Shown here: positions 5,906-62,417 of the stretch, one piece after another
Layout of the letters: every line of letters starts with the position of its first letter
How positions within the stretch are numbered: the stretch's first letter is position 1
Assembly: GCF_003918875.1 (NCBI RefSeq)
Contig: NW_025767179.1
Span: 434,001-498,000, forward strand
Direction of reading: 5' to 3'
Length of the DNA: 64,000 nt
Source of the DNA: Haliotis rubra
Taxonomy: Eukaryota
Notes under the pieces: model-generated
What the model was told of the DNA's origin: nothing
What the model saw: the letters and a program-made list of their open reading frames with translations, nothing else
Database searches by the model: none
Made by a program: the position numbers and the translations under genes

Positions 5906-8681
5906 TCAGTTATTGCGTTTCCTTTTCCATTTATCGTAAGACATAAAGATAAACAACCCACACTGAAGTAAACCTGCACCGGAAACCATGTATACAAAGG
6001 CATCGGCACCAATCATACTCATCATCAGGCCACATATGGCGGGACTGATCAAAAAAGGCAATGTAGTCGGAAAATAGAACCACATTCAGAAATCGGGGTG
6101 ATCCATCCGTGTTCTCCTGTACCCATGCCAGACATCCAGGGAATAGGGGACCTATTCCGACAGCAAACAGAAGACTGTTTGTCCACATCATGATGATACT
6201 TGTGTCCTTAAATATGAGGAACAGAACAGATGTTACTCCGGAAAGCAAAACGAAGAGTACCATCACCATGTCAAGACTTAACCTAGCTGAGAGGACGACA
6301 CTGCCTAATCTGCTGAGGAGGGCGGTGGCAGAAAACACAGAATACATCATGGACATGTCGCTGAGACCCAGGTTCAGTTGAGTGCAAATTCCAAAGGTTA
6401 CGAAGAGCTCTTGAAAGGATACATTACAAGTAGAGCAGGTGAAGGTAAAGCACATTGTTAAACACATAAACATGGGACTTGTGCTTCTGTTGACTGCTGG
6501 TTTCCTTTTTATTGATGGGGGTACTTCCATAACGTCGCCTTCCTTCAAGATAGTATTGTAACAACCCATTAGGCCTGAGGACACAAGGAGACTTAATCCT
6601 GACATGATTATGAAGGGGTATTGTATCGTATTAAAACCGTTGCACCTCTGTTCTGAGTTAGGATGAGTTGTTGTCGTGTTGCAGAACGCTTCGTCCGCAC
6701 CAATGCCCTGTCGACTGTGCCTGAAGAGATTAGACACAATGGGGACACTTATTGTGTTAAGGGACGCTCCTGATTGTACTAAGGACACGACAAAAGCGTT
6801 GTCTGGCCATATGACGAAGCAGTGTAAAGTTCGAACTGAAAGAAAAGAGCAAAAGTGAATAAATTCAAGTAAGTCCAGCAACTGCAGGGTCACGGAAGGT
6901 ATGATGAAGTCTGAAATCTTAAAACATGTATGGTTACACAGCTGATTGAAGAAAAACTGATATGTATCGACCGATAATGTGCCAGCTCCAGTTGTCTATT
7001 ATGTGCATAACGAATCTCGATTTATCCTGGACCAAACAGAGACACAAGTGCCTGATGCTGTACGCTTTTCCCATTCCTGAAACGTTTATGGCAGGGATGT
7101 CTATCACTGAGTTCCAGCGTTGAATCCGTCTTGCAAGCTTTATGCTGCATATTGCATATATTGCATTTGTTTTCGTTCAAACTTACAAATCATGACTAAT
7201 CATCTGGTGTTCGATCTAATAATCCCAGGATACAGTGATGAAAAATACTACCAATCGGCGTCGGTGCCAGTATATCAGGAAAGGAATAGGATGATACATT
7301 AAAATTGCTACTTACTAAATATACACATTCCTGTACACCAGCCAGCAATGAGGAGCAAGAAGATGGTCAGCCACAAGAACGGAGACGTGGGTACAGCAGC
7401 AATAACCACAGCGTTCAATACCAATATTGTCGCCAGGAACAGACAAGTATCCATCTTGTCCTTGATGAAATGTACAGTCAGGCTACTACAGCACAGACCT
7501 AAACCATAGGCAAACAGGAGGGAGCTGGATGTCTTCAGGTCCACGCCCAGCAAACATTGGATGTCGGGTAAGGTTACTCCGATCAACGTTGTTGTCATCT
7601 GTCATGAAATATTTGATATCAATTAAAAGAAGAAGGCATGTTTCACTTCTCGGCAGGTGAGAGAGTTAAAATGTAATGTAGTATCGGCATGGTTTCACCC
7701 ACACAGTGAAAAGATCACATTTATGTGTACACAGTAATAAATCATAACTGCAAAGTCATGTCCAAATACAAACCTGTTTTACACATTTGAGAGAGTGAAT
7801 TAAAATTGCACGTCGGCATCATCAACACACTTGACTGACTGACTATATGAATTGCAACAGATAAAAGCACGGTCTTTAAGCCACCAGCAGGCAAAGGTGG
7901 TAAACCTTGCTGGATACCATAGGGACTGGCGCTTAAGAGTTGAAAGGAAAATGAAATGCCACTGTACGTGTTGTTATTTTTAGATAGATAAAATGATATT
8001 TAGAACATAAAGTATATTAAGTGCATAATGTTTACAATTATTTCAACCGCCTTACCGTAGCAAAGGCTGCACCAAACAGCACTGACGTGTAGATGATGCG
8101 GTTGAGGTTGGAGATATCCCTGCAGGAAATACAGATCCAATAATAATTTTCTTATATTCCACCCATTAGCGTATAAGAATAAGAGGCAGGGCAAAAGTGA
8201 GCTATGCACGTTCCCTAACGACATGTACCCATCTATAAACATATATCAATACCTAAATAAATACAATACAGATTCATGATTCAAGGCAGAAGAGTTCTGG
8301 CACTGAATGGTGACATACAGATTTTCTGCAAGTAATATGTTTGGGGCAGACAGCGATTCATTTGATTTTAAATCGAACTTATTGAGACAAAAGCATAGTA
8401 GTGGTTTCCCCACATAGCTGTAAGCAACTTGTACAGACAACACAGACATCAACATCAATAGGTACCTACCTAAATATATGCGTTTCAAGAGAGTATATTT
8501 TGACCAATCATATAAGACACTGCTACTCGTACTCGCTATGCAATACTGTTGGCATCAAATAATCTGATAATGGGCAAGGGTGTGGATATTTTTAGTGATC
8601 CCTGCGAATTGTCCATAATAATTTTTTATCCTGCAAAACAAACTCCCACCTCAGACCTTTCAGTTCTTACCTGGCTGTCAT
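5906..8681 (-). CDS. MFS transporter paralog 1 (MFSD4/NAGLT1-like), with +1 frameshift near the C-terminus
   Basis: Coding exons 8681-8671 (ATG ACA GCC AG|gtaag), 8119-8056 (DISNLNRIIYTSVLFGAAFAT), 7598-7316 (MTTTLIGVTLPDIQCLL...) and 6835-5906, all with GT-AG sites and consistent phases. Many hydrophobic helices, including AVGIGPLFPGCLAW. An A6 run at 6051-6056 has one base more than needed to keep the paralog 2 frame; removing it restores the C-terminus to TGA at 5906-5908. Confidence 0.75.
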
Positions 8682-9454
8682 TCTTCAAATACAACCCGAG
8701 TGCTCGGCAGTGAATCACTAGGAATTATTGATATTAATCAACATTTAGATGAATCCGTCTGTTCACCAGACTGCGTGCTATGTGGTGCATGATATATTAA
8801 AATGACAATACACAAGCCAGTAGGAGGGAGTGAGTTTAGTTATATGCCGCTTTTTTTTAGCAATATTCCAGCAATATCACGGCGGGAGACACCAGAAATG
8901 GGCTTCACACATTGTGTCCATGTGGGGAATCGAACCCGGGTCATCGGCGTGACGAGCGAACGCTTTAACAACTAGGCTACCCCATCGCCCCCAAACTAGT
9001 TGTATCAGACTATATCGTTCACTGAAACTGAATCAGTAGGAAAGGGATTTACTTTTCACATTTAGCTATTTTACAGTTATATCACGGCTATTATAACATA
9101 ATACTTTGGCTTTACTCCATGGTCCATAGTATGGTCATCTACCTTCAGTTGTTGGCGATCTATAGCTCGTGTTTTATACTGTATTGTCTTCTTTAATTGT
9201 AATGTTTTAGCTTTGCTCGCTAGTTTCATATTCATATCTGTGATTCTCTAGTATTTTTACTGTCCATCGTCGACAGGTTTTAATCTTCTAAATGTTTTCA
9301 CTTTTTATTGTATAATTTGTTTTCGTCACGATATGGCTAAGATATTGCCGATGTGACGTTAAATATTAACTCACTCACTCATTAGCTTTACTCATTTAAA
9401 CATTTGTTAGGAAGGATAACAATATATGGACGTACAACTTCTTTATTGCTGCGA

Positions 9455-9498
9455 GAGCGACGTTTCGGTGCAGGGTTCTAACACCGTTATCAAGCAAG
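9455..9498 (-). ncRNA. Minimal hammerhead ribozyme, U3-A8 variant core
   Basis: gc-UUGAUAA-c-GGUGU-uagaacccu-GCACC-GAAAC-GUC/gc on the minus strand. Confidence 0.7.
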
Positions 9499-11114
9499 TG
9501 ATGAACAGCATAAGGATGAAGGAGCATATATACAAGTTAGAGCAGATGTTTGTACAGTACAATGGGGATTAGGAAGCCAGACACAATAACAACACAAGGG
9601 CTGGAAGCCAGACACAATAACAACACAAGGGCTAGATGTGCTCTTTTTGTAGTGTGTTGGTGGGGTCCTTCTTTAGTCTCTTGTAGGTCGTCTTGTCTTG
9701 GAGGATGGTGTCAGTCAGGCTGTTGAAATGGGCTGTGTCCATGATGACCGTTGCCTTGCCTTTGCCTGCTGGGGCTATGGTGATAGTTTTGTCAGTTTTT
9801 AGGCTGTGGAGGGATTCCTTTTCCTGATGGATGAGGTTGGGTTTCTGGGGTCTGTCTTTGGAGAGGATGGTTATCTGGTGTCGGAGGAAGTCAACGTTGC
9901 CGCCGGGGGCCAGTTGCTGCAGGCCCTTCTCAATATTAGTGATGAAATCATCGTTGTTGCCCGGATGTTTGTGGGTGAGTACTTGAGGCCATTGGCTAAG
10001 ACTGCAATATGTTGCTGGTTGAGCTTCTTGCTGCTTAGGTTGACGACAGTTTTTCTCTGGTAGTCCGCAATGGAGGAAGGTTTTCATGGTTGATGGGTAT
10101 CCATCTTTCATTTGTTGAACTTTGCAATGTGGGTCTTTTTCCTGGCAGAGTCTAGGTTGCAGTTACTTGTGGTCTGCATGTTTTTGAGTGAAGCGTAGGT
10201 GTCCTCTGAGAGAATTGATTGAAGGTACTTTTGTTTTTCGGCGATGGTGTGTAGGGTGAGGTCCCTGGTCTTACGGTGGTGGCGTATCCTTTCTATGACG
10301 AGATGTTGGGAAGCTTTATGGAGGATGTAATGAGCTGCTGGCGAGTTGACTGGGCTTCTTAGCTGTAGTATGACCCTTTGGGTATGAGTTTGTTGTCTCT
10401 GCATCGCGTTAGGAATTGTCAGCCACAAAGTCCAGAGACCCCTAAAAAAACAGGTCAATATAGATGTTATTTTCAAAAGAAGTAACATCATCCTCAACAC
10501 CATCAAAGCGTCTGGCAAGCCACCTACCAGCCAGAAACAACCACCATGGGGAACAGTTTAACACGACTGTGGACAGACCTACTTAGGTGAAACATCAAAA
10601 CCCCTCAAAATCCGAATCAAAGAACATCAGACCTCAGTATCCAAACTAGACTCAAAATCAGCCCTTTCAGATCACTTCAAAGACAATCCCCACCACAATA
10701 TCCAGTTGGACAAAACCCAAACCCTAACAACCAACCTCAAAAACTATAAACTCAGGAAACTCCAAGAAGCCATCTACATCAAAAGACTCCAGCCATCAAT
10801 CAACCGTGACCAAGGTTACTACATACCTCCTGCGTACTACCAGCTCATTAAAGATCCTCATCATCAATAATCCCCCATTTATGTATACAACGCATCATCC
10901 TCATAATCACCTATTTATGTATACAGGCTTCACTTCCCATTGTGTACTTTGCAGGCTTCAATTGTTAACGCGTTCATCTAGCCCTTGTGTTGTTATTGTG
11001 TCTGGCTTCCAGCCCTTGTGTTGTTATTGTGTCTGGCTTCCTAATCCCCATTGTACTGTACAAACATCTGCTCTAACTTGTATATATGCTCCTCCATCCT
11101 TATGCTGTTCATCA

Positions 11115-11157
11115 CTTGCTTGATAACGGTGTTAGAACCTACACCGAAGCGTCGCTC
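11115..11157 (+). ncRNA. Second copy of the U3-A8 hammerhead, with GAAAC>GAAGC substitution
   Basis: gc-UUGAUAA-c-GGUGU-uagaaccu-ACACC-GAAGC-GUC/gc. Confidence 0.6.
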
Positions 11158-11499
11158 TCGCAGCAATAAAGAAGTTGTACATCCATATATTGTTATCCTT
11201 CCTTACTGCTCCAACTTCTAAATGCCTCTCAAAGAAGTTAAACATTTGGTTTTTAAAGAGTTATACATTATACCTGGAAATATGTCTAAACTCCTATAGC
11301 TAGTCTATTTGCCAAGTTTATCTCTTCCTGAAAACGTGATGCAAGGTCCATATCTAACGTCCATGTCAAACACAATCCAAATATTACACGCCCACCAAAC
11401 ATGTATCTGGAATAATAATCATTAGTTATTCATATAGCACCTGTTTCCAGTCCACTATGCAACACCAGATGTTACACTTAACACAAATACTAATGTTAT

Positions 11500-17261: not shown

Positions 17262-18419
17262 GGCGTACACGGAAAATTGAAATTTGGGCTGAACTGAACA
17301 TGGACGTTTCGTATTCAATTTACCCGCATCGAATGTGCTGTCGGCATGCTTATCTTTATGTCCTCTGTGCTATCCGCTCTTCTTGAAAATAGTTTAGGCA
17401 ATCAATAGCTAAACGAAAGACAAAAGTTGCCAATGCTGAAAACGTAACGAGCGACCAATGGGATCGGGTGATCAGGCTCACTGACTAGGTTTGACACATG
17501 TCATTGTATTCCATTGCGTAAATCGATGGTCATGATGATCATCACTGGATTGTCTTGTCCAGGCATGATTGTTTACATACAGCCTCCATATATGTTGAAT
17601 ATTGCCGATGCGGCGTTAAGCAAGACACTAAACAAACAAACATATAGGAAACCCATTTGTTCGTCGCTGTGATCGCTGAAGAAGTACAGTTATTTCCGAG
17701 TTATTTCTGTCTTAATTACCGGAAATGATTGGTTTTTAAAAACACCCAGAGGCCCTTAAATCTAAAGACAAGACCTCGGGACATTGTCTCAGCTGACATA
17801 CCAATAAGCTGTGGTCATATTGTCAGTTTAGATCTAAGGTCAGGATCACTTCCTCTGTTTTCGATAATGTTATGTGCCAGGAGAGATTGTTGCAAATATA
17901 CTTCATGTCAAAAGTTTAGACTCACTTGTGTAAATATAGCCACTTACTTCAGGAAACTCTTCTAAACTTAATGTTGCAACATATTCCATGCTGTTTAAAG
18001 GTACTGTTTACACATGAGCTGATGTATTGTAAAACAAATTCGTAAAGTTGAAAAGAATATTGTCATGAGTTCAATAAATAATAAACATCAGTGAAAATTG
18101 GCGAATTCTTAACAAAACTTTACACCAAAACGCAGCTGTTCGCGTGCACTATATTTGCACAATGCTTTTCAGCAATTCGATGCATGATCCTCGTGCAATT
18201 CATCTGCATAAGGTTTGCAGTTGGTTCCCCTAAGTTAGTGGAAATTACCATCTTCGATGTAACACATATCATATAGTGAGTGTTTTAAGTGAGTCTAAAC
18301 TTTTGAAAGGAAGTATATGTATATATTTGTAGTGATGGTCAATTGAAACAAATGACTGAAACGCTCGTAAAATAATGGATGTTGATGACAGGTTTCGTGA
18401 CTTGACAGTTTCTTGAAGT

Positions 18420-19560
18420 GCCTGTTTTCCTCTAATAACATAAACACATGACACTTTTATGGATAAAAACTTCGTTTTATTCTTTACACGACGTTTCAGA
18501 GCTAATTCTTGCTCCTTCATCAGGTGAATACTGAGTCAGTACAAAGAGTGAATATATATAGATAAAACATGTTTCCACAATGCAAGGAGGGAGACTGTAC
18601 AAAGATAACAATATAATTACGTAGCCAATAAGATTACGAAGCCATTAAGATTGGATTAATGCATAAAGAAAATCCAAGAGTGGGTGTGGAGTGATGTACA
18701 AGAATAACAACATATTAGGAAACCAATTGGATAGGATTAATGTACAAAGATAACAATGAACGGATGAAGCCAAGAGATTATAGGACAACAGAGTATACAC
18801 TCGGAAGGTAAATGCCTTGGTCCCGGTTAATGGCTGGCTTCTTTCTCTGGATCTCGATACTTTCTTGAAGTTTCCGCTTCTTCCAGTGGTTGATGTTTGT
18901 GTGTAGATTCTGGGTTTGTTGTCAGGAAATATGATGGTTGGGATTTTTTATGAGGTGTTCCGAAAGGGCAGATTTCATGTCAGCTATTTCTACAGAGGTC
19001 TTGTGTTCTTTTATCCTGGTAGATATGGGGCGTGATGTCTCTCCTATGCATTTGTCTCCGCAGTTGCATGCTATTTCGTATACACATCCTCTAGGATTTG
19101 GGGTGGACTCAATGGGGCCTTTCCCATTAGCATGTAGCATATTCTTTAGTGTTCTGTCTGATGTGAAAGTGACATCTGTTTTGGCTGTACTGCTGATCTG
19201 GTGACTTATGGGACCTAGGTATGGGATACTGACGAGGATAGGTGATGGGGCTGGTTTGGACTTGGGATTAGGGTCTTTTTGCTGGCAGGCCAGGGTTTTG
19301 CATATGGCCTTCTCTACTAGCTGTTTAGGGTATCCGTTGAGGGCACTGAAGGTGTGCGTTTAGGTGATGGATTTCTTGGCCGAGGCAGTCTGAATTGCAG
19401 ATGGCTATGGCTCGTCGGGTGAGGGTGGCAATGATGGCTTGTTTGATCTGAGGGTGGTGATTTGACAGGTAGTGAATGTACTGGTCCGTGTGGGTCGGTT
19501 TGCGGTAGACGGCAGTGTGGATGTTGTCTTGACTGTTGTCGAGTTGTACATCATGAACGC
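18420..19560 (-). mobile_element. 5'-truncated, frameshifted Penelope-like element
   Basis: RT C-terminal motif AVYRKPTHTDQYIHYLSNHHPQIK (19325-19530) and GIY-YIG GCVYEIACNCGDKCIGETSR...RIKEH (18922-19140), followed by a pseudo-LTR with a hammerhead and AATAAA. Boundaries are approximate. Confidence 0.88.
18486..18527 (-). ncRNA. Minimal type I hammerhead ribozyme (canonical core, GUC site)
   Basis: cac-CUGAUGA-a-GGAGC-aagaauua-GCUCU-GAAAC-GUC/gug. Confidence 0.85.
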
Positions 19561-22827: not shown

Positions 22828-25800
22828 TCACATGTTATTGCGTTTCCTTTTCCATTTATCGTAAGACATAAACATAAACAACCCACACTGAAGTAAACCT
22901 GCACCGGAAACCATGTATACAAAGGCATTGGCACCAATCATACTCATCATCAGGCCACAAATAGCTGGGCTGACCAAAACCCCTATATAGTTGTAAAATA
23001 AAATCGCATTCAGAAACCAGAGTGACCCGTCCGAATACGCCTTCATCCATGCAAGAAACCCTGGGTATATGGGACCTATTCCGATAGCAAACAGAAGACT
23101 GTTTGTCCACATCATGATGATACTGGTGTCCTTAAATATCAGGAACAGAACAGATGTTATACTGGATAGCAAAACGAAGAGTACCATGATCATGTCAAGA
23201 CTTATCCTAGCTGAGAGGACGACACTGCTTAATCTGCTGAGTAAGATGGTGACAGAAAACACAGAATACATCATGGACATGTCGCTGAGACTCAGGTTCA
23301 AATGCGTGCGAATTCCAAAGGTTACGAAGAGCTCCTGAAAGAATATAAGAAGGGTAGAACAGGTGAAACTAAAACATATCGTTGAACACATAAACAGGGT
23401 GCTTCTGTTTGCTGCTGTTGTCTTATTCCTTAGTGGGGGTACTTCCATGACGTCACCTTCTTTTAGGATAGTATGGTAACAAAACATTAGGCCTGTGGCC
23501 ACAAGAAGACATAATCCTGACATGATTATGAAGGGGTATCGTATGTTGGTATTGAAACCGTTGCATCTCTTCTCTGAATTAGGAGGAGTTGTTGTCGTGT
23601 TGCAGAACGCTTCTTCTGAACCAGTGCTCTGTCGATTGTGCCTGAAGAGATTACCCACAAGTGGAACACTTATCGTGTTTAATGATGCTCCTGACTGTAC
23701 TAAGGCCACAATAAAAGCGTTGTTTGGCCATATGACGAAGCAGTGTAAAGTTCGAACTGAAATAAATAAATAAAGGTGTATCAATTTAAGTGATACCAGC
23801 AGATGTAGTGTCACGGGAGGTATTTATGAAATCTTACAATATGTATGGTAACACAACTGCATGAAAAAATACTGATGTGTATCGACCGATAATGCCAGCA
23901 CCACAGATGTCTAAAACCAGCGAGAGCCAATCTCGATTTCTCTTTGACTATAGATGTGATTCCAGCATATGAAACGTCACAGAACGAATTAATAATATCT
24001 AAAAAAGAAAGGGACATGATTGTATGTGTGGCAAGGGGTAACACTGCACCAAAGAGGCGTACATCAGACCGTTTTACCCGATGGAGAAGCATGCAACGTA
24101 TTTATCTTACCATGTTAAATGTACAAAATATCATTTTATTTTGTTTTGAAGATCGTTACCGACTAAATGACAGGTAAACAAAATGGCGTCTGCCTCTCGA
24201 CTGGATTTTTCAAATCAGTGAAACATTCCGACAAGCTTAAAACTGCTATAAAAATTGTTAACGATGTTTAAGTTGAGTGTGCAAACGATTCAATGTATAA
24301 AATAGTTTAAATAAAGCAGTGAAAGTCGGTAAAATAAATGCGTACATAGTGAACTCAAAAACAGCTAATCGAACGGTTTTCGAACTCCGGGCATTGCATG
24401 CGTCATATTATGACGTCATGCGATTGTGAGCGATACAGTTCCTCGGCGGAGAGTTTGGCGGTTACCGTGGCAGCGGGTAATATTTTTGACAAGTTGTCAT
24501 CCTCCTGGGAGGTGTGACACGGAGACTTGTTAAAGCGTCATTTACCAATGAAATTTACATGAAGGTAAGATAATGACATGTGTATCGACGAATAATGAAC
24601 CAGCACCGCCCTCCAGTTGTTTGTAATGATAAGAGCGAATCCAGGTTTATCCTTTGGGATGCAAATGCCCCATGATGTGACGCTTTGCCCACTCCTTAAA
24701 CGTTTCTGGCAGGCACTTATATTCGTGACTATCACTCATGACTATCATTCGTGAATCTCTCTTGCATGCTTTATGTTGCATATTGCATTAGTTCCCTTTC
24801 GTTGCTTTGAAACTTCCAATCATGACAAATCAGCTGGTATTCGAACTTATGATTCTTGAGACGACACTGATAAAAATTAGCACCAATCGATGTTGACAGC
24901 AACATTTCAGAAACATAAGTAGGGCTGCAGAACATGCTGATACATTAAATTGTATGCTTACCAAATACACAAATCCCTGTACACCAACCAGCAATGAGGA
25001 GCAAGAAGATGGTCAGCCACAAGAACGGAGACGTGGGTACAGCAGCAATAACCACAGCGTTTAATACCAATATTGTCGCCAGGAACAGACAAGTATCCAC
25101 CTTGTCCTTGATGAAATGTACAGTCAGGCTACTACAGCACAGACCTAAACCATAGGCACACAGGAGGGAGCTGGATGTCTTCAGGTCCACGCCCAGCAAA
25201 CACTGGATGTCGGGTAAGGTTACTCCGATCAAAGTTAACGTCATCTGTCATGAGATATTTAACATCAATAATACGTATACACGACATGAGAGTAAAACTG
25301 TTACGTCGCATCGACAGTTTAGGTATGCATAAAAAGAGTCATAACTGTAAAGTCAGAGGCAAAGGAAACCATCTTACATATGATTTAGCTGAAATCGTGC
25401 ATCATCATTGTTCCGAATCATATTTTGAATCATATACTCATTAGAACATTACAATAATATTTACAGCAGATTAGTGGGCGGACTATAAGCCACCATCAGC
25501 CAAGGAAGGTTACCTTGCTGGATATCTTGAGGACTTTTTTTTTGTTGACAGCACTGTGTGTTTTTAGATGAATGAAATATACTAAACGTATAATGTAACA
25601 GTTATATTTGGGATTACACTTTCTCAGTATAGTACAGATTCTAGTACTTTTTTGGGGTTGAGTCCCATCCGGGATTCGAACCCACACCCTCAGAGTCAGG
25701 CACCTAATCGCCAGCACACAAAGTCAGACGCCTAGACCGCTCAGCCACCGCGGCTCCCACAAAAATGGAAGTCGGACAACTGGTAGTCTAGACTGCAGAC

Positions 25801-26358
25801 TTTGTGTACCCCTCTGATAAGCGTTAATTGGCACGGCTCCCACGGCCGAAAGCTATGAAATACACAATGCCATTTTAGAAAGTGGTCAAATGTAACATAT
25901 GTTATATTTGGGATGACACTTTCTCAGTAAAGTGTGTGTGCTGGCGATTAGGTGCCTGACTCTGAGGGTGTGGGTTCGAATTCCGGCTCTGAGGGTGTGG
26001 GTTCGAATCCCGGATGGGACTCAACCCAAAAAAGTACTAGAATCTGTACTTTACTGAGAAAGTGTAACCCCAAATATAACATATGTTACATTTGACCACT
26101 TTCTAAAATGGCATTGTGTATTTCATAAAGGTATAATGTTTCCAATTATTTCAACTGCCTTACCGTAACATAGGCTGCACCAAACAACACCGCCGTGTAG
26201 ATGATGCGGTTAAGGTTGGAGATATCACGCCTTCATGAAATAGAGATCCAATAATAGCTGTAATACATTCCACAAATTATCATACATGAAGGATATCAGG
26301 TAGGGCAAAATATTTACATATGTGCTCTCTCCACCCTCAGCTCTTACCTGGCTCCCAT
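22828..26358 (-). CDS. MFS transporter paralog 2 (MFSD4/NAGLT1-like), apparently intact
   Basis: Exons 26358-26348 (ATG GGA GCC AG), 26230-26164, 25244-24962 and 23756-22828. GT-AG sites and phases match paralog 1, and the frame is open to ...YDKWKRKRNNM*. Highly similar to paralog 1, including intronic blocks. Confidence 0.8.
25597..26125. mobile_element. tRNA-containing non-autonomous retroelement with Penelope-type tail and inverted arm
   Basis: 300-bp periodicity (gttatatttggg at 25601 and 25901). Pol III A box TGGCTGAGCGG and B box GGTTCGAATCC on the minus strand. Inverted partial copy at 25932-26125. A 14-bp TSD taaa(c/g)gtataatgt lies at 25583-25596 and 26126-26139. The element is absent from the homologous intron of paralog 1. 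Confidence 0.8.
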
Positions 26359-27356
26359 TCTTCAAATACAACCTGAGCTACCGATAGTCATCAGCATGTA
26401 GATAAATCCATCTGAGCACCTGCAAGCCACAAAATGAATAAAATCTATATAATATAAACTGCGTGTTTTGTGGGAATTACATATTACAATGACAGTGCAC
26501 AAGCCCACTAAAACTGAATCAGCAGGAAAGCGGAATCGCTTTTCACATTTTTCTACAGTTATAGGACGGCTGCATCGAGCTATTGTTTATCACCTTTGTG
26601 GAAAGGGACATGATGAAAATGTGCAAATTACAAACGTCTGCATCTGGCTTCGTTCATAAATCTGGATTTGTACAACCACTTCGTCGTCGTGTTCGAGAGC
26701 GGTCACCTACTGAGACACCATGATTCAATCGTTCAACATAATCCAATGGAATTTCAGTTAGTTGGCTGGTTTGTTGTTTAACGCCACACTCAGCAATATT
26801 CCATCTATATGGCGGTCTATAAATAATCCAGACAATCCAGTGATCAACAGCATGAGCATCAATCTACGCAGTTGGAATATGACGACATGTGTCAACCTAG
26901 TCAGCAAGCCTGACCATCCGATCCCATTAGTCGCTTCTTGTGACAAGCATGGGTTACTGAAGATCAATTCTAGCCCAGTACGAATTGAATCATTTCCTCG
27001 CGATGCCCCGTAAATATACAACATGCGGTTTCTATATGATTCCATACAGAGAAGGCCTATAACACCTTATGAAAATATGGCATATTAAATTAACTTTATA
27101 CCATGGGATTCCGTGGACGCATGCCCGATTATATTTCACAATTTCTTGACAATGAACAAAGGTTTAGTCAGAGTAGAGGAGTTATCTCCAAATATTATAA
27201 CAAACAATGAATAATCACTAGATCCCTGATACGCTTCTAATACGATTCAAATACGGGTAGTCCCCCTAATAGGTTTATTTCAAACAGTAGACAAGCTGGG
27301 AGTAATCAACTGTACAGTTACAATACATTATGAAGTGTTAGGGTGCTCGGATTATA

Positions 27357-29510: not shown

Positions 29511-29939
29511 CTGTTACCATCACTGAAAACCACAAACGCATGCTGACGATACAGTCGGAGTCATTACGTTTGAATTTTATTACTCCATTACTGTTGAATG
29601 TACATCAGTATGAAACCTTACTGATCCAAATTGAAAATATTCAGTATGAGTGAGTATCAGATTCCAGTAACAGTTGTTCATAACATATAATATGTTATTC
29701 ATAACTTACAGCAGGACACTAAAGTAAACCCATTTCTACAGGCGGTAAAGCAATTAAGTGTGTAGTGTGATGATGATTAGTTATAAATAAAATAATAAAA
29801 TCGGTTACAATTCAGAAAAGTGTTTCCATTACTGCCATGTCTTTCTATTTTGAAATGCTACCAAACACTCTTTCTCAATGAATTCAATATGCATTGTTGT
29901 ATATTCTTCATCACAGAAAAAAGACATGTCATACTTATA

Positions 29940-41684: not shown

Positions 41685-41760
41685 CACCTGATGAAGGGGT
41701 AAGAATATACTCCGAAACCTCCTGTTCCTCAAAATAAAGACGTTAGATCCATAAATTCTC
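41685..41760 (+). mobile_element. Solo PLE pseudo-LTR remnant with degenerate hammerhead
   Basis: cac-CUGAUGA-a-GGGGU-aagaauau-ACUCC-GAAAC-CUC-cug followed by AATAAAGA...ATCCATA. The cleavage-site region is mutated, and no PLE ORF is seen nearby. Confidence 0.65.
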
Positions 41761-50938: not shown

Positions 50939-52108
50939 GCACTATCACTACTGAATCTTCTAAAGCCACAAGTCACATGATCGAAACCGAAAACAATCGC
51001 TTTGTGACGAACTAAGTAAATATTCCATCTTTAAACTTCCAAGTAAGTGAGGAAGTGTTCTTTCCGAATTCGAATGTGACATAATGCATTCTAGTAGTGG
51101 TAATCACTATTTCTTATTAACTGAGGTAGAACCAGTCCACTTTTAGATTGAAGCGTTGGACGCAGTCAGAAATATATCGGACTCCTGTTTATAACAAAAA
51201 TGTCTTTTCCCGAAATCGGAATATACCAAAAGAATGAACATAAGTAGAACTGTGGATCTTTTGCAGACAGAAATCAATATTTGCAGCAAAGAGCGTTTGG
51301 GTGGTCCTGGCACAGATAGGCTGGTTAGGCTTATCGTCAGCTCAGGGCACTTGCCCCTTCTACACGCAGCCTCGACAGCGAATGAGTGTTCTCCCATGAA
51401 GTAATGCCTTCCCGAACCCACCAACATTGTATCGGAGAATAAGAAGACTCCCCAAGTTAGTGTTTCAAAAGGACATTCTCCTGAACGATAAACAATCCTA
51501 TGATAGTTGTTAATATCTTTAATCAGAGCAATGACAAATCAGTGTCATTGGAGAATCACGTGTTTTTGCAATGACCTTGGCCTATTCAATCATTGTTTTA
51601 ATTATTGAAGCTTTCTAAAATTTTACTGTTACAGATGGTCATGATGATTGCCATCATATTTTATCGTGTTACTCACTAAACAAAACTGAATTCATTTTTC
51701 TAATTGCATTTACAAATATATATTTGTTCTGCGATCTGACCATGCAAGATTTAATGTTTAAAAGATGAAGGTCTTCCATGTATCCCCTGGGATATAAGAA
51801 TCACAGTTAAGCATGTCCTGCTTAACTGTATTAATTTTTCCATCACAAGGGATAAATATTTCAGTGTAAAACAGGGAAGAGTATTTTTTTATAATGACAA
51901 TTCTCATTTAGGTATTGCTTTCTTAAAATATATAGAATTGTTGGATAAATTTTGATATATATGTTGTAAACAGGTAATGTTTTACAATTGGTAGATTGAG
52001 TGAGTGAGTTAATATTTAACGTCACATCGGCAATATCTCAGCCATATCGTGACGAAAACAATTTATACAATACAAAATGAAAACATGCCGATGTGACTAT
52101 GAATGTTA

Positions 52109-52260
52109 GGGGCGGTTGGGTAGCCTAGTGGTTAAAGCGTTCGCTCGTCACACTGAAGACCCGGGTTCGATTCCCCACATGGGTTCAATGCGTAAAGCAC
52201 ATTTCTGGTGTCCCCCGCCGTGATATTGCTAAAAGCGGCGTACAACTAAACTCACTCACT
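52109..52260 (+). mobile_element. tRNA-headed SINE (family B), representative copy
   Basis: A box GTAGCCTAGTGG, B box GGTTCGATTCC and (ACTC)n tail. Other copies lie at about 2312-2476, 8828-8992, 37937-38045, 58497-58591 and 62626-62741. Confidence 0.85.
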
Positions 52261-53569
52261 TTAAATGTTAACTTACTCACTCACTATTCCGCCACTCGCC
52301 ATTATTACCCAGTGGACTACTTCATATTCATCGACAAACACCCCGGTACATACGTGTCGGTCAACGATTTTATATCAATATTAACACTTCTGTTAATTTT
52401 ATGTGTTTTTGTAGTACACAACTGATAATGGCTGATAAAACATGATTTCAGGACTGGTGAGCTTTGTATCGATTTTCAAATTACAGAGCGTTACGAATGC
52501 CTAAACAGTATAATTCTGACAGTATAATTTTACACTATTCATTCTGAATACATGCAAAGATCACACTACAGAAACATTACTACTGTTACGTTCCTGGTTT
52601 TCCGTCAAAATACAATCCTGCCGTTGATTGTTCATCGCTTTACAATCTGAAGGATTATGAATCCAAAAGCGTTTTATTCCCAGACCTTAAATCCAACTTG
52701 TCCCGCAATTCCAGTCTTGTCCGTCTGTTACATATAATCAATATAATGACAGTCACGTACACTAAAGTTGTCATGAAACCATCTGCATTTGCAATTGAAT
52801 ATAAATTTGAAATGATGTAATCATTCTGTTCATAAATGAACTGGTGTCGAGGGGAGATGTAAGTATGGATTATGTTGTATTTTATCTTGTCAAAGGGTTG
52901 TGTATACGTTTGTAGATTTACTAACGTATACTGAATACACTTTGTCGTAAAGTGGCTGTGTAAAAATAACGCCCTTCCTTCAAAGGATTAACCGCCATAC
53001 GTTGACTGATTGTTCATTGTCAAACTAAACTACTTCAAATAAATGTGGACATCATGCAAATAGTTGTCAGGTGTGCTATTTTGGGTGACCAATGAAACTA
53101 TCACTAGTTATGACTTCTTTGAGTGGCATTTAGAAGCTGGTATAATAGCCAGGGACGGTTTTTTGTAGATGCTAATCTACACCGAGACGTCTATTAAAAA
53201 ATACCCATTCCTGTTCATCACTAGATATAACGATTTATACATTCTTAGCATATTAGACACATGACATGGAACAGGTGTCTTTGTCATCTGCAGATGAATG
53301 GCATATCGTTCCTTTATGTGGATATTGATAGATACATTCCTCGAATAAGGTAATGGTCTGATATTATTGCTCTAACTTAAGTCGGTTTTAACTTTAATAT
53401 TTGTATTTTGTTTTTATTCATTTGTTGTCGAATCCAACAGAATCATTCCACTTCATTTTCTTTCGCCATGAAGGTGAGACAACGTACACAAGGTCGCACT
53501 TAGGGTGTGTGTGTGAAATATGATTCACGTAGGCAATCTATGAAATGTCTAGATATTACAGTCATGTTC

Positions 53570-60058: not shown

Positions 60059-62417
60059 GGACGACAGTATCTCCAACGCAAACCGCATCATCTACACGGT
60101 GTTGTTGTCTGGCACAGCCTACGTTACGGTAAAGTAACTGAAACATTATTGTTCTATTTCGTCGTAGCTGTTTGAACACGTGTGTTAAAGATATAACACA
60201 GCGGCAAAGCATTTACAATAATCTTGAGACATCTTTGCTGAAAGCCCTCGATTGTAGCATTTCCACTATATCGTGAGAATGTGTTGATAGGTCACTCTCA
60301 AATAGTGATAATAAACGTGTTCGTAAAATGGTGAGCGCACTTCGTTAAAAGCTGACGGCAAAGTATACAAGCAGTTACTAGTCTGGCTAGTATTTAGATA
60401 TTTGCATAACGATTCAGAGACAGAAACGTTTTGCCCGTGAAGATTCGGATTAGAATTGGTCTTCAGTAACCCATGCTTGTCGCAAGAGGCGACTAACGGG
60501 ATCGGATGGTCAGACTAGGCTGACACATGTCGTCGTATTCCAACTGCGTAGAGTGATGCTCATGCTGTTGATCACTGGATTGTCTGGTCCAGACTGGATT
60601 GTTTATAGACCGCCGTCATATAGCTGGAATATTGCTGAGTGCGACGTAAAACAACATGCTGACGAACTGTTTTCTTCTTTGCGTAGACATCTTCAGCATC
60701 ATTGATCGGCCTCTCCCTACCTGACATCCAGTGTTTGCTGGGCATCGACCTCAAGGTAGCTAGCTCCCTTCTGTTTGCCTATGGCCTAGGCATGTGCTGC
60801 AGCAGCCTTACAGGGCACTTCATCAGAGACAATGTAGATACCACTTTGTGCATGGTGGCCACGTTGGTGTTGAACGCTGTGGCTATTGCTGCAATACCAA
60901 TATCTCCGTTTGTGTGGCTCACCTTCACCCTGGTCCTCATAGCTGGATGGTGTACGGGTATAGCGTCATTAGGTAAGTTAATGAATCATTGGGAATACAC
61001 CCTCTAAATAAATTGTTGTCCTCCTCCAGTGGCTTAACATTTGTGTGCATTATTAGACGACAACATACCACTCACATTCAATGACTTTCCCAACACCAGC
61101 ACCTCTCCCTCTCCTCCATATTAAGTTTGAATGACTCAATATCATAGAAATAATCCTCAGAGCTATCTGCATATATCTATTTCAGTGCGCAAAGGTACTG
61201 TAAGTCCCCATGGTCCCTAGTATGGTGATCTACCTTCAGTTGTTGGCGATCTATAGCCTATTTTTATATTACATTGTCCTCTATAGTTAAAATGTTTTAG
61301 ATTTAATTACTAGTTTTACATTGATATCTGTGATTTTCTAGTTGTTTTACTGTCCTTTGTTGACAGCTATTTAAATTGATCACCTTGTTTTCATCGCTGT
61401 ATGGCTGTAATATTGACGATGCGATGTAAAATTTTAACTCACTCACTCACTATTTCAGTGCGTGTATTACAGTGCTACATCATATGGACAAACAACTTCT
61501 TTGGAGTATTCTGCATTGCGTTAGGAACGTCGATCAGCATGATCACAACTCCTCTGATGGCCAAACACTTCATAGAACATCGTCGGTTGGTTGCTGTAGA
61601 TGCCTTGTTAAGTAATGTGACAAGATCAATTGAAGAGAAGAGGTGTGACGGCTTAAACACCACCATACGATATCCCTTCATAATAACATCAGGGTTCGGC
61701 CTTCTTCTGGCCACAAGCCTCATGTGTAGCTACAATACGTTCTTGCAGAAAGGCGACGTGATGGAAGTAACAACAACGAATAGGAAACCAACAGTATATA
61801 GAAGCCCCAGTCTAATGTTCATAACATTCACCATGGGTACAGCCTTCATGAGCTCGGCCAGTCTGGTATCATTTCTGGAGCTCTTTGTTACTTATGGAAT
61901 TCGTTGCCAACTGCACCTGAGTGTCGGCGAAATGTCTCTTCTGGCTTCGGCCTTCTCTGTAGGAGTTTTCATTACCAGATTAGTCGGTGTCTTTTTAGCA
62001 GATAGAATTAGAATTGAGATCCTGGTACTGTCCTATGTTCTTCTCGTTAATGTAGCATCTGTTCTGTTCATTCTGTTTAAAGACACAAACATCACCATGT
62101 TGTGGACAAACTGTATAATGTATGCACTTGGGTCAGGATCGATGTTCCCCGGTCTTCTGGCGTGGGTACAGAAATATTCATATCGTTCACCACAGTTCTT
62201 GAATGTTATTATGTTTTTTGATTATTTGGGTTCGTTAGTAGTCCCAACGTTATCGGCTTTGCTTATTGGAATGTTTGGATCAGATGCCTTTATCTACACG
62301 ACGGCAGGTATCGCTTTTTCCCAACTCCCGCTTTTTATTGGATTGTGGTGCGTTAGTGTTGAAGTGAAAAATGAAGCCGATCTGGACAACGTACACCCTT
62401 TGATAAGTGATCAATAG
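60059..62417 (+). CDS. MFS transporter paralog 3 (more divergent; first coding exon not located)
   Basis: Exons 60059-60128 (DDSISNANRIIYTVLLSGTAYVT), 60687-60972 (...LIGLSLPDIQCLLGIDLK...) and 61459-62417 (VRVLQCYIIW...). Exon structure and phases are the same as in paralogs 1 and 2. Confidence 0.78.
60434..60655 (+). mobile_element. SINE-like repeat (family A), representative copy
   Basis: gtcgtaagaggcgactaacgggatcggg...gaccgccgccatatagctggaatattgctgagtgcggcgtaaa. Other copies lie at about 2835-3000, 16898-17108, 17447-17640, 26757-26975, 38815-39040 and 49715-49910. Confidence 0.8.
61190..61449 (+). mobile_element. SINE-like repeat (family C) at the last-exon acceptor of MFS paralog 3
   Basis: ccatggtccctagtatggtgatctaccttcagttgttggcgatc...(ACTC)n, with a 13-bp TSD ctatttcagtgcg. 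Other copies lie at about 2480-2780, 9117-9381, 11990-12290 and 56975-57310. Confidence 0.85.

Follow-up and report, generated by a model that had tools for sequence, protein, structure and literature searches.

A tRNA-headed SINE in Haliotis rubra probably mobilised by Penelope-like machinery

SINEs are parasites of LINEs, and Penelope-like elements (PLEs) form a third class of retroelements. The passengers of PLEs are, to our knowledge, either hammerhead-bearing retrozymes or captured sequences. The terminal repeats of a PLE are enough for mobilisation in trans (PMC3846280), and PLE insertions have a specific signature of partial tandems, an inverted 5′-truncated copy and a one-sided tail of 30-40 bp (PMC8557442, PMC3846280). 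In work with a purified PLE protein, both strands were cut and extended and synthesis started at two internal sites of a stem-loop (PMC11167929), which explains the one-sided tail extension.

The window analysed here, a 64-kb stretch of Haliotis rubra DNA, contains a SINE insertion of 529 bp (25597-26125) that forms one composite. In it a 299-nt unit, present on the minus strand as 1.1 head-to-tail copies, is joined head-to-head to a 5′-truncated copy on the plus strand. The unit comprises a 94-nt leader, a degenerate class-II tRNA-like head and a 69-nt 3′ hairpin tail. It is short and non-coding, the longest stop-to-stop frame having 60 codons and occurring only across the tandem junction. 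We favour as the likely origin of the composite a single retroposition event of a non-coding element of about 300 nt that has a tRNA front, a PLE-like 69-nt tail and a PLE-type mode of insertion. Its parts are as follows.

25583-25596, no strand: left target-site duplication, TAAACGTATAATGT, a direct repeat identical to the right copy at 13/14 positions
25597-25654, minus: short end of the minus-sense arm, with four junction bases (25597-25600), the truncated tail hairpin (minus; 5′ stem strand 25617-25624, loop cut at about 25601) and the post-tRNA hairpin
25655-25760, minus: tRNA-like head, A box 25737-25747, B box 25672-25682
25761-25854, minus: leader of 94 nt
25855-25933, minus: 79-nt 3′ part of the upstream unit with the full tail, seen by direct and inverted repeats
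25934-26125, plus: inverted, 5′-truncated copy starting in the tRNA anticodon region, with B box (26000-26010), post-tRNA hairpin (26031-26052), tail hairpin stems (26057-26064 and 26097-26104) and terminal 21 nt (26105-26125)
26126-26139, no strand: right target-site duplication, TAAAGGTATAATGT, a direct repeat

All 529 bp arrived in a single insertion at an AT-rich site, which was duplicated over 14 bp. The two AT-rich copies of the duplication flank the composite, and two paralogous sites without the insertion, at about 8021-8035 and about 60140-60150 of the window, carry the sequence once each; the initial annotation had described such a duplication with one empty site. Its partial tandem is borne out by a 33-nt direct repeat (25601-25633 and 25901-25933, 94% identical) with a spacing of 300 nt. 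The inverted arm with a full tail and the shortened direct end, which it had compared with a PLE in the window, are likewise present: the plus-sense arm (25934-26125) carries the full tail and the minus-sense arm stops within the tail-hairpin loop, as that PLE (PLE1) does. Microhomology with the target leaves up to 9 nt of uncertainty in where this loop is cut. Each outer end of the composite lies in a tail: one reaches the outer terminus, the other stops inside the loop, and a tail extension of 33-45 nt is seen at one end only. Over their shared part the two arms are identical at 121/124 positions. The plus-sense arm also has a 27-nt internal tandem duplication (25960-26013), absent from the initial annotation.

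The same window provides two PLE insertions for comparison.

66-78 and 1245-1257: 13-bp duplication around PLE1
79-1244, plus: PLE1, a 5′-truncated Penelope-like element; complete tail on the inverted arm (79-193), ORF for an endonuclease domain (234-839), minimal hammerhead (1166-1196), direct end cut within the tail loop
9403-11237, plus: second PLE, with an inverted arm cut in the tail loop (about 9403-9461), a full tail at the direct end (11151-11237) and an 11-bp duplication, TTAAACATTTG

A third insertion, L008 from Haliotis asinina, is flanked by a duplication of 14 bp; its short end lies in the loop and its extension measures 31 nt. All three combine inverted arms, a duplication of 11-14 bp and one end cut inside the tail-hairpin loop, and the one-end extension measures 43 nt in PLE1 and about 33 nt in the second element. 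The identity of PLE1 rests on Haliotis homologues, the hammerhead and its architecture, its ORF fragment not being recognised by Pfam. The SINE shares with PLE-type insertions the partial tandem, the adjacent inverted 5′-truncated copy and the one-end tail extension; a hammerhead motif in the repeat is the feature that it does not share. Its head-to-tail junction, formed by 25855-25933 and the leader, resembles a PLE pseudo-LTR. Dependence on PLE machinery is well supported for this insertion because the partial tandem, inverted truncated copy, one-sided extension, 14-bp duplication and tail hairpin make up the published PLE signature (PMC8557442, PMC3846280, PMC11167929) and because the geometry matches three real PLE insertions. 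The SINE probably relies on such machinery instead of the enzymes of a LINE.

The tails of the SINE and of PLE1 have the same length, 69 nt counted from the first base of the stem to the outer end. Both have a predicted 8-bp stem, and 49 of the 65 aligned bases (75%) are identical. This similarity is modest: PLE1 is the best of 3128 window pieces with a score of 37.5, the runner-up reaches 36, and the best pairwise score lies barely above AT-rich chance matches. A covariance model (R2) trained on PLE tails only matches both SINE tails (25.7 and 24.7 bits, E 0.009 and 0.015) with all eight pairs standard, and the higher-scoring matches are all real PLE tails; when the model is built without PLE1 the E values are 0.18 and 0.43. 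No alignment by covariance model extends upstream of the tail stem. The alignment with a PLE tail proposed in the initial annotation is upheld. A better match to a LINE 3′ UTR, which it named as a refutation, was not found in the window: no stretch there, LINE 3′ ends among them, is closer to the tail than PLE1. Poly-A or microsatellite ends are absent from the SINE, unlike the other tRNA SINEs of the window. Neither the 64-kb window nor 85 kb of other Haliotis DNA yielded an autonomous PLE whose tail is nearly identical. The latter, six loci from H. rubra and H. asinina retrieved via PLE protein fragments, also provided PLE tails.

The analysis rests on one insertion: there is no second copy of the SINE in the window and none in the six other loci. 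A 21-mer of the tail occurs in three metagenome contigs that have only those 21 bases in common and come from one unrelated organism, and this was set aside as a chance match. Searches for the SINE patterns in a bacterial and archaeal genome collection and in a viral collection gave nothing, its 41-codon open frame had no candidates among gene calls on abalone contigs, and an exact look-up of five ORFs of the window found 0/5 in the searched collection.

The head is tRNA-derived, as initially annotated, though below detection thresholds. Its A box matches at 10/11 positions and its B box at 11/11, with 54 nt between them. ARAGORN at default settings reports no tRNA in the head, and at an 80% threshold gives a 98-nt cloverleaf with a long variable arm and 5/7 acceptor pairs. 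The match to tRNA-Sec in Rfam (25661-25755, minus; 18.6 bits, E 0.89) is below threshold. The tRNA-Leu assignment of the initial annotation is a tentative one, based on similarity of the D arm. A perfect B box and a nearly complete A box in a degenerate cloverleaf suggest that selection has acted on the promoter rather than the fold, and it is solely the intact boxes that point to a Pol III role. The leader ends in the only run of at least four T in the unit, a T5 (within 25760-25768) just upstream of the head. It contains a 22-nt stretch complementary to the 5′ half of the tRNA and repeats the first 10 nt of the head. A 94-nt leader ahead of the head is not typical of Pol III SINEs and counts against the reading favoured here. 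The 299-nt unit has a predicted fold of -115 kcal/mol (z about -5.6 to -6.0 against shuffles), in which the tRNA 5′ half pairs with the leader. The tRNA module taken by itself gains no extra stability (z -0.39). Processing by RNase P/Z, which had been envisaged for the tRNA-like unit, is disfavoured because the cloverleaf is sub-threshold, the stability of the module is like that of shuffles and its 5′ half pairs with the leader.

The hairpin that follows the tRNA (7-bp stem, 8-nt loop; 26031-26052 and 25629-25650) is present as first described, and the core CUGAUGA...GAAA of a hammerhead is indeed absent from the SINE on both strands. The likeness of its loop to hammerhead stem II amounts to a shared AGAAT. 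Rfam finds no hammerhead or tRNA above threshold in the SINE, and its hammerhead result is uninformative because it also misses the real hammerhead of PLE1. No self-cleaving motif was found in the unit. An antisense motif (about 25813-25850, plus) with CUGAUAA for CUGAUGA and ...GAAAG lacks G8, has no stem II beside the core and folds no better than shuffles, and it was rejected. Canonical hammerheads are also missing in the Naiad and Chlamys PLEs (PMC8557442). Of the initial interpretation, a parasite of PLE machinery is well supported for this insertion; a tRNA unit in the place of the ribozyme is no more than a hypothesis.

A mechanism can be proposed in which the source copies would be transcribed by Pol III via the A and B boxes. 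The tail hairpin would be recognised by the reverse transcriptase/GIY-YIG endonuclease of a PLE, which may cut both target strands with a 14-nt stagger. cDNA could then be primed from both 3′ ends and start at the two internal initiation sites known for PLEs. One cDNA would have run past the unit boundary, by a multimeric template or a template jump, to give the partial tandem, and the two cDNAs would then have been joined head-to-head at a GT microhomology. With the only T run of at least four placed immediately before the head, transcription of a tandem source copy would give a unit-length RNA of the order tRNA-hairpin-tail-leader, which the PLE enzyme could still use through internal initiation. 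A more specific version, in which the tRNA-type promoter and the T5 run before the next head cut out unit-length folded Pol III transcripts for copying by the PLE enzyme, would make the SINE a ribozyme-free counterpart of the retrozymes and is considered unlikely. If it held, the start and stop of transcription would replace the job of hammerhead self-cleavage in retrozymes.

The leader and the buried 5′ half of the tRNA are also what would be expected if the tRNA part were a captured passenger in a non-autonomous PLE derivative, transcribed by read-through or by Pol II, with no role for its A and B boxes. Such an element would be comparable to sequences caught between PLE terminal repeats or to MRC1 of Chlamydomonas; PLEs do mobilise unrelated sequences in trans (PMC3846280), and non-autonomous Chlamys elements make partial tandems and multicopy head-to-tail inserts (PMC8557442). 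The state of the two boxes, which suggests promoter selection, and the position of the T5 run exactly upstream of the head speak against a passenger, which we regard as a doubtful explanation. A ribozyme-free analogue of the retrozymes in another sense, a unit-length structured and possibly circular RNA copied by rolling-circle reverse transcription by the PLE enzyme, would fit the head-to-tail junction, the strong fold of the unit and the unit-length Pol III transcripts expected from tandems via the T5 run. It is nevertheless highly improbable, as the unit has no self-cleaving motif, its antisense CUGAUAA...GAAAG being defective, and no circularisation signal was identified in it.

The remaining explanations dispense with PLE enzymes. 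LINEs occur in the window and twin priming can produce inversions, so that a tRNA SINE of the usual LINE-dependent kind, its insertion rearranged by twin priming or by later duplication and inversion, has to be weighed. The two arms have 125 nt in common and each terminates in the 3′ tail, an arrangement that twin priming from one RNA cannot produce. The duplication encloses the whole composite, and the paralogous sites are empty. Together with the lack of an A-rich or microsatellite tail and a best tail match, within the window, in PLE1, this makes LINE dependence quite improbable. Inverted arms of 125-190 nt and a flanking duplication could also be those of a foldback or MITE-like transposon moving at the DNA level, an explanation that is scarcely credible given the asymmetric ends (one short by 33-45 nt), the tRNA-derived content, the head-to-tail junction and a 14-bp duplication that is atypical for DNA transposons.

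On the favoured reading of a single PLE-type retroposition, a tRNA-promoted SINE copying the tail of a PLE would bring PLEs under the SINE/partner rule. Such an element would supply a short natural substrate defining the minimal RNA signal for the PLE enzyme, namely the 69-nt hairpin tail and its two start sites. It would also mean that mobilisation in trans can do without a hammerhead, in line with indications from in vitro work (PMC11167929). No description of a PLE-dependent tRNA SINE was found in the literature covered, which left Repbase reports and many subscription papers outside its scope.

Among known systems, the PLEs of Haliotis (PLE1, 9403-11237 and L008) share with the SINE a 3′ hairpin tail of the form AGAAnnnG, loop, CnnnTTCT, AAA(A)TGSC and about 12-15 nt, as well as inverted arms, one-sided tail extension and a duplication of 11-14 bp. 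The SINE differs from them in having no ORF, no hammerhead, a tRNA-derived head and a tail whose identity to the nearest PLE tail examined is only 75%. Metazoan non-LTR retrozymes (PMC7761336; bioRxiv 10.64898/2026.07.22.740005) are likewise short, non-coding and head-to-tail, with a proposed dependence on the PLE enzyme. What defines a retrozyme is circular RNA together with a type I hammerhead in each unit, whereas the SINE unit lacks the hammerhead core. The SINE-like elements SM-alpha and Sj-alpha of Schistosoma are also short, tandem-prone retroposons with a Pol III promoter, but they carry an active hammerhead (PMC6765202); the accessible part of their published descriptions, on which this comparison is based, gives neither a PLE-type tail nor the insertion geometry. 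The MRC1-type Chlamys elements (PMC8557442) and the captured sequences of Adineta vaga (PMC3846280) are passengers of PLE enzymes with partial tandems, and only their 3′ end is in common with an autonomous PLE, as would probably hold for the SINE; unlike the SINE they do not carry a tRNA-derived head and its A and B boxes. Classical tRNA SINEs, as described in molluscs (PMC4758252), are also found in the window.

8840-9000 and 52108-52290: classical tRNA SINEs with ACTCACTC tails

They share with the SINE a tRNA head with A and B boxes, a short non-coding body and a flanking duplication. Classical elements are single units with simple-repeat ends, whereas the SINE described here is a tandem-plus-inverted composite with a PLE-type hairpin tail.

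The SINE insert, a composite at window positions 25597-26125, is bracketed by a 14-bp AT-rich target-site duplication in direct repeat, 13 of its 14 positions being identical, so that 25583-26139 comprises one composite insertion with its flanking duplications. The gene segment flanking the insert has two paralogs in the window, and each contains the target once and no insert sequence.

25583-25596 and 26126-26139: the two copies of the target-site duplication
about 8021-8035: empty target site in one paralog
about 60140-60150, other strand: empty target site in a second paralog
25933 down to 25597, minus strand: left part of the insert, given in the orientation of its tRNA-like module
25934-26125, plus strand: right part, an inverted copy that begins in the anticodon region and reaches the complete 3′ end
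25960-26013, plus-sense arm only: private 27-nt tandem duplication over the B-box region

Because the duplication brackets the whole insert and the paralogs are empty, the 529 bp entered in a single event that postdates the gene duplication; the target-site duplication and empty site named in the initial annotation are thus borne out. The insert sits in an apparent intron, with a GTAAG splice donor only some 27 nt upstream of it (26140-26240, minus strand). Translation of the short exon there gives a peptide with DISNLNRIIYTAVLFGAAYV, and three paralogs in the window (about 7355-8196, 25001-26720 and 60068-60926) conserve this exon. The study of the SINE covers this one insertion, and scans of other sequence collections, a protein-level search and exact look-ups found nothing for it.

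The left part consists of the final 79 nt of one unit directly abutting a full unit, in which a 94-nt leader precedes the tRNA-like head (about 105 nt); an A6 run, a hairpin (7-bp stem, 8-nt loop) and a tail hairpin that breaks off within its loop come next. It meets the right part head-to-head at a GT microhomology, and over the 125 nt that they share the arms differ at three positions and by one 1-nt indel. The insert thus has a 3′ tail at each outer end, cut in the loop on the left and complete on the right. The partial tandem of an approximately 300-bp monomer, noted earlier, is found, and so is the inverted arm with full tail opposite a shortened direct end, which had been likened to PLE1 (a 5′-truncated Penelope-like element, PLE).

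Ends of the SINE insert and of three PLE insertions
79-1244, PLE1: duplication 13 bp; direct end cut in the tail loop; extra 43 nt on the inverted arm
9403-11237, second PLE in the window: duplication 11 bp (TTAAACATTTG); inverted arm loop-cut; extra 33 nt or so, the direct end carrying the full tail
H. asinina PLE (locus L008): duplication 14 bp; short end cut in the loop; extra 31 nt
25597-26125, SINE insert: duplication 14 bp; short end cut in the loop; extra 33-45 nt, a range due to microhomology with the target

This geometry is the strongest evidence for PLE-type insertion of the SINE. The arrangement seen here, in which a partial tandem adjoins an inverted 5′-truncated copy and just one end carries a tail of 30-40 bp, is described as PLE-specific (PMC8557442, PMC3846280). 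A purified PLE protein acts on both DNA strands, cutting and extending each; reverse transcription begins at two internal stem-loop sites with the tail being the sequence between them, and hammerhead mutants retain insertion (PMC11167929). Classical twin priming by a LINE cannot yield two overlapping arms that both end at the 3′ terminus. The insert also differs from another tRNA-derived SINE family in the window (8840-9000, minus strand; 52108-52290, plus strand), whose members are single-unit inserts with 3′ ends of ACTCACTC-type repeats.

Counted from the start of the stem to the outer terminus, the tail is 69 nt long in both the SINE and PLE1 (reverse complement of 79-147). The two are identical at 49 of 65 aligned positions, and both are predicted to fold into an 8-bp stem that closes a loop of roughly 32 nt, with AAAATGSC and some 13 further bases after it. 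Among 3128 window pieces on both strands, the PLE1 tail matches the SINE 3′ region best (score 37.5; mean 17.6, sd 3.4), but since short AT-rich chance matches score up to 36, sequence alone is not decisive. Independent PLE tails were therefore gathered from the second window PLE and from DNA around Haliotis rubra and H. asinina PLE fragments matched by the PLE1 endonuclease-domain ORF; they follow the same plan as the PLE1 tail. The metagenome assembly ERZ27279858 from ENA also holds short contigs (L006, L007) whose PLE sequence resembles that of abalone and includes inverted arms bearing hammerheads; they are presumably host DNA.

A covariance model of six PLE tails, with PLE1 and the SINE both left out, scores PLE1 at 52 bits (E 1.5e-8), whereas the SINE tails reach no more than 18.9 and 17.1 bits (E 0.18 and 0.43). 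After one iteration to 12 PLE tails, the SINE still left out, its tails reach 25.7 and 24.7 bits, with rough E-values of about 0.009 and 0.015. All eight stem pairs are standard in this alignment, and the SINE tails rank just under real PLE tails, alongside two further PLE tail remnants that score about the same. Across the PLE tail set 94% of stem cells pair, and two pairs have changes on both sides. Judged by sequence and predicted fold, the SINE tail, whose likeness to a PLE tail had been noted at the outset, appears to belong to the local class of PLE tails as a divergent form, nearest to PLE1. Further model matches lie at 53109-53180 (minus strand, 24.1 bits), resembling a tail-only fragment, at 18392-18492 (minus strand, 23.6 bits), downstream of a hammerhead, and at 29780-29874 (plus strand, 21.3 bits).

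Minimal PLE-type hammerhead motifs occur at three places in the window.

1166-1196: hammerhead motif of PLE1
18493-18523, minus strand: hammerhead motif
41688-41718: hammerhead motif

The insert contains no CUGAUGA...GAAA on either strand. Rfam reports no hammerhead in it, a result without weight because the bona fide hammerhead at 1166-1196, the only one tested, also goes unreported even in permissive mode. An antisense hammerhead-like motif in the insert was rejected, as A replaces the essential G8 and stem II is missing. Of the initial proposal that a hairpin with a stem II-type loop follows the tRNA module without CUGAUGA, the hairpin and the absence stand; the likeness to stem II shrinks to AGAAT within the 8-nt loop, and upstream of the tail stem the PLE-tail model gives no alignment.

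The tRNA-like head retains a perfect B box and an A box matching at 10 of 11 positions. ARAGORN detects no tRNA in the insert at default settings; at an 80% threshold it draws a cloverleaf of 98 nt in which the variable arm is long and 5 of 7 acceptor pairs form. Rfam gives a sub-threshold tRNA-Sec match alone (18.6 bits, E 0.89). Folded alone, the module shows no more stability than its shuffles (z -0.39). With the boxes kept, the cloverleaf sub-threshold and the fold no better than chance, the head fits a promoter-bearing tRNA relic rather than a processed tRNA-like structure, so that the boxes of the earlier reading hold and its processing option is disfavoured. The putative Leu label of that reading would fit the D arm of eukaryotic tRNA-Leu.

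The whole 299-nt unit (25601-25900, minus strand) folds at -115 kcal/mol against -86 +/- 5 in shuffles (z -5.6 to -6.0), an effect of the leader's partial complementarity to the tRNA 5′ half (22-nt core, 82%, score 28; shuffles mean 15.3, maximum 25). The leader also contains a second copy of the head's first 10 nt.

25760-25768, minus strand: contains T5, the only run of at least four T in the unit sense strand, directly upstream of the tRNA-like head

In tandem copies T5 could serve as terminator for the preceding unit, and from its placement just before the head we infer that Pol III would produce from a tandem source a unit-length RNA in the order tRNA, hairpin, tail, leader. The extra 3′ leader sequence might be tolerated by the PLE enzyme through internal initiation.

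In the literature covered, which excludes Repbase reports and many journals, no SINE is described that has a tRNA head and a PLE tail but lacks a hammerhead. Pol III-promoted SINE-like elements with hammerheads occur in schistosomes (PMC6765202). Passengers of the PLE enzyme are already known, namely retrozymes, MRC1 and sequences captured between PLE terminal repeats.
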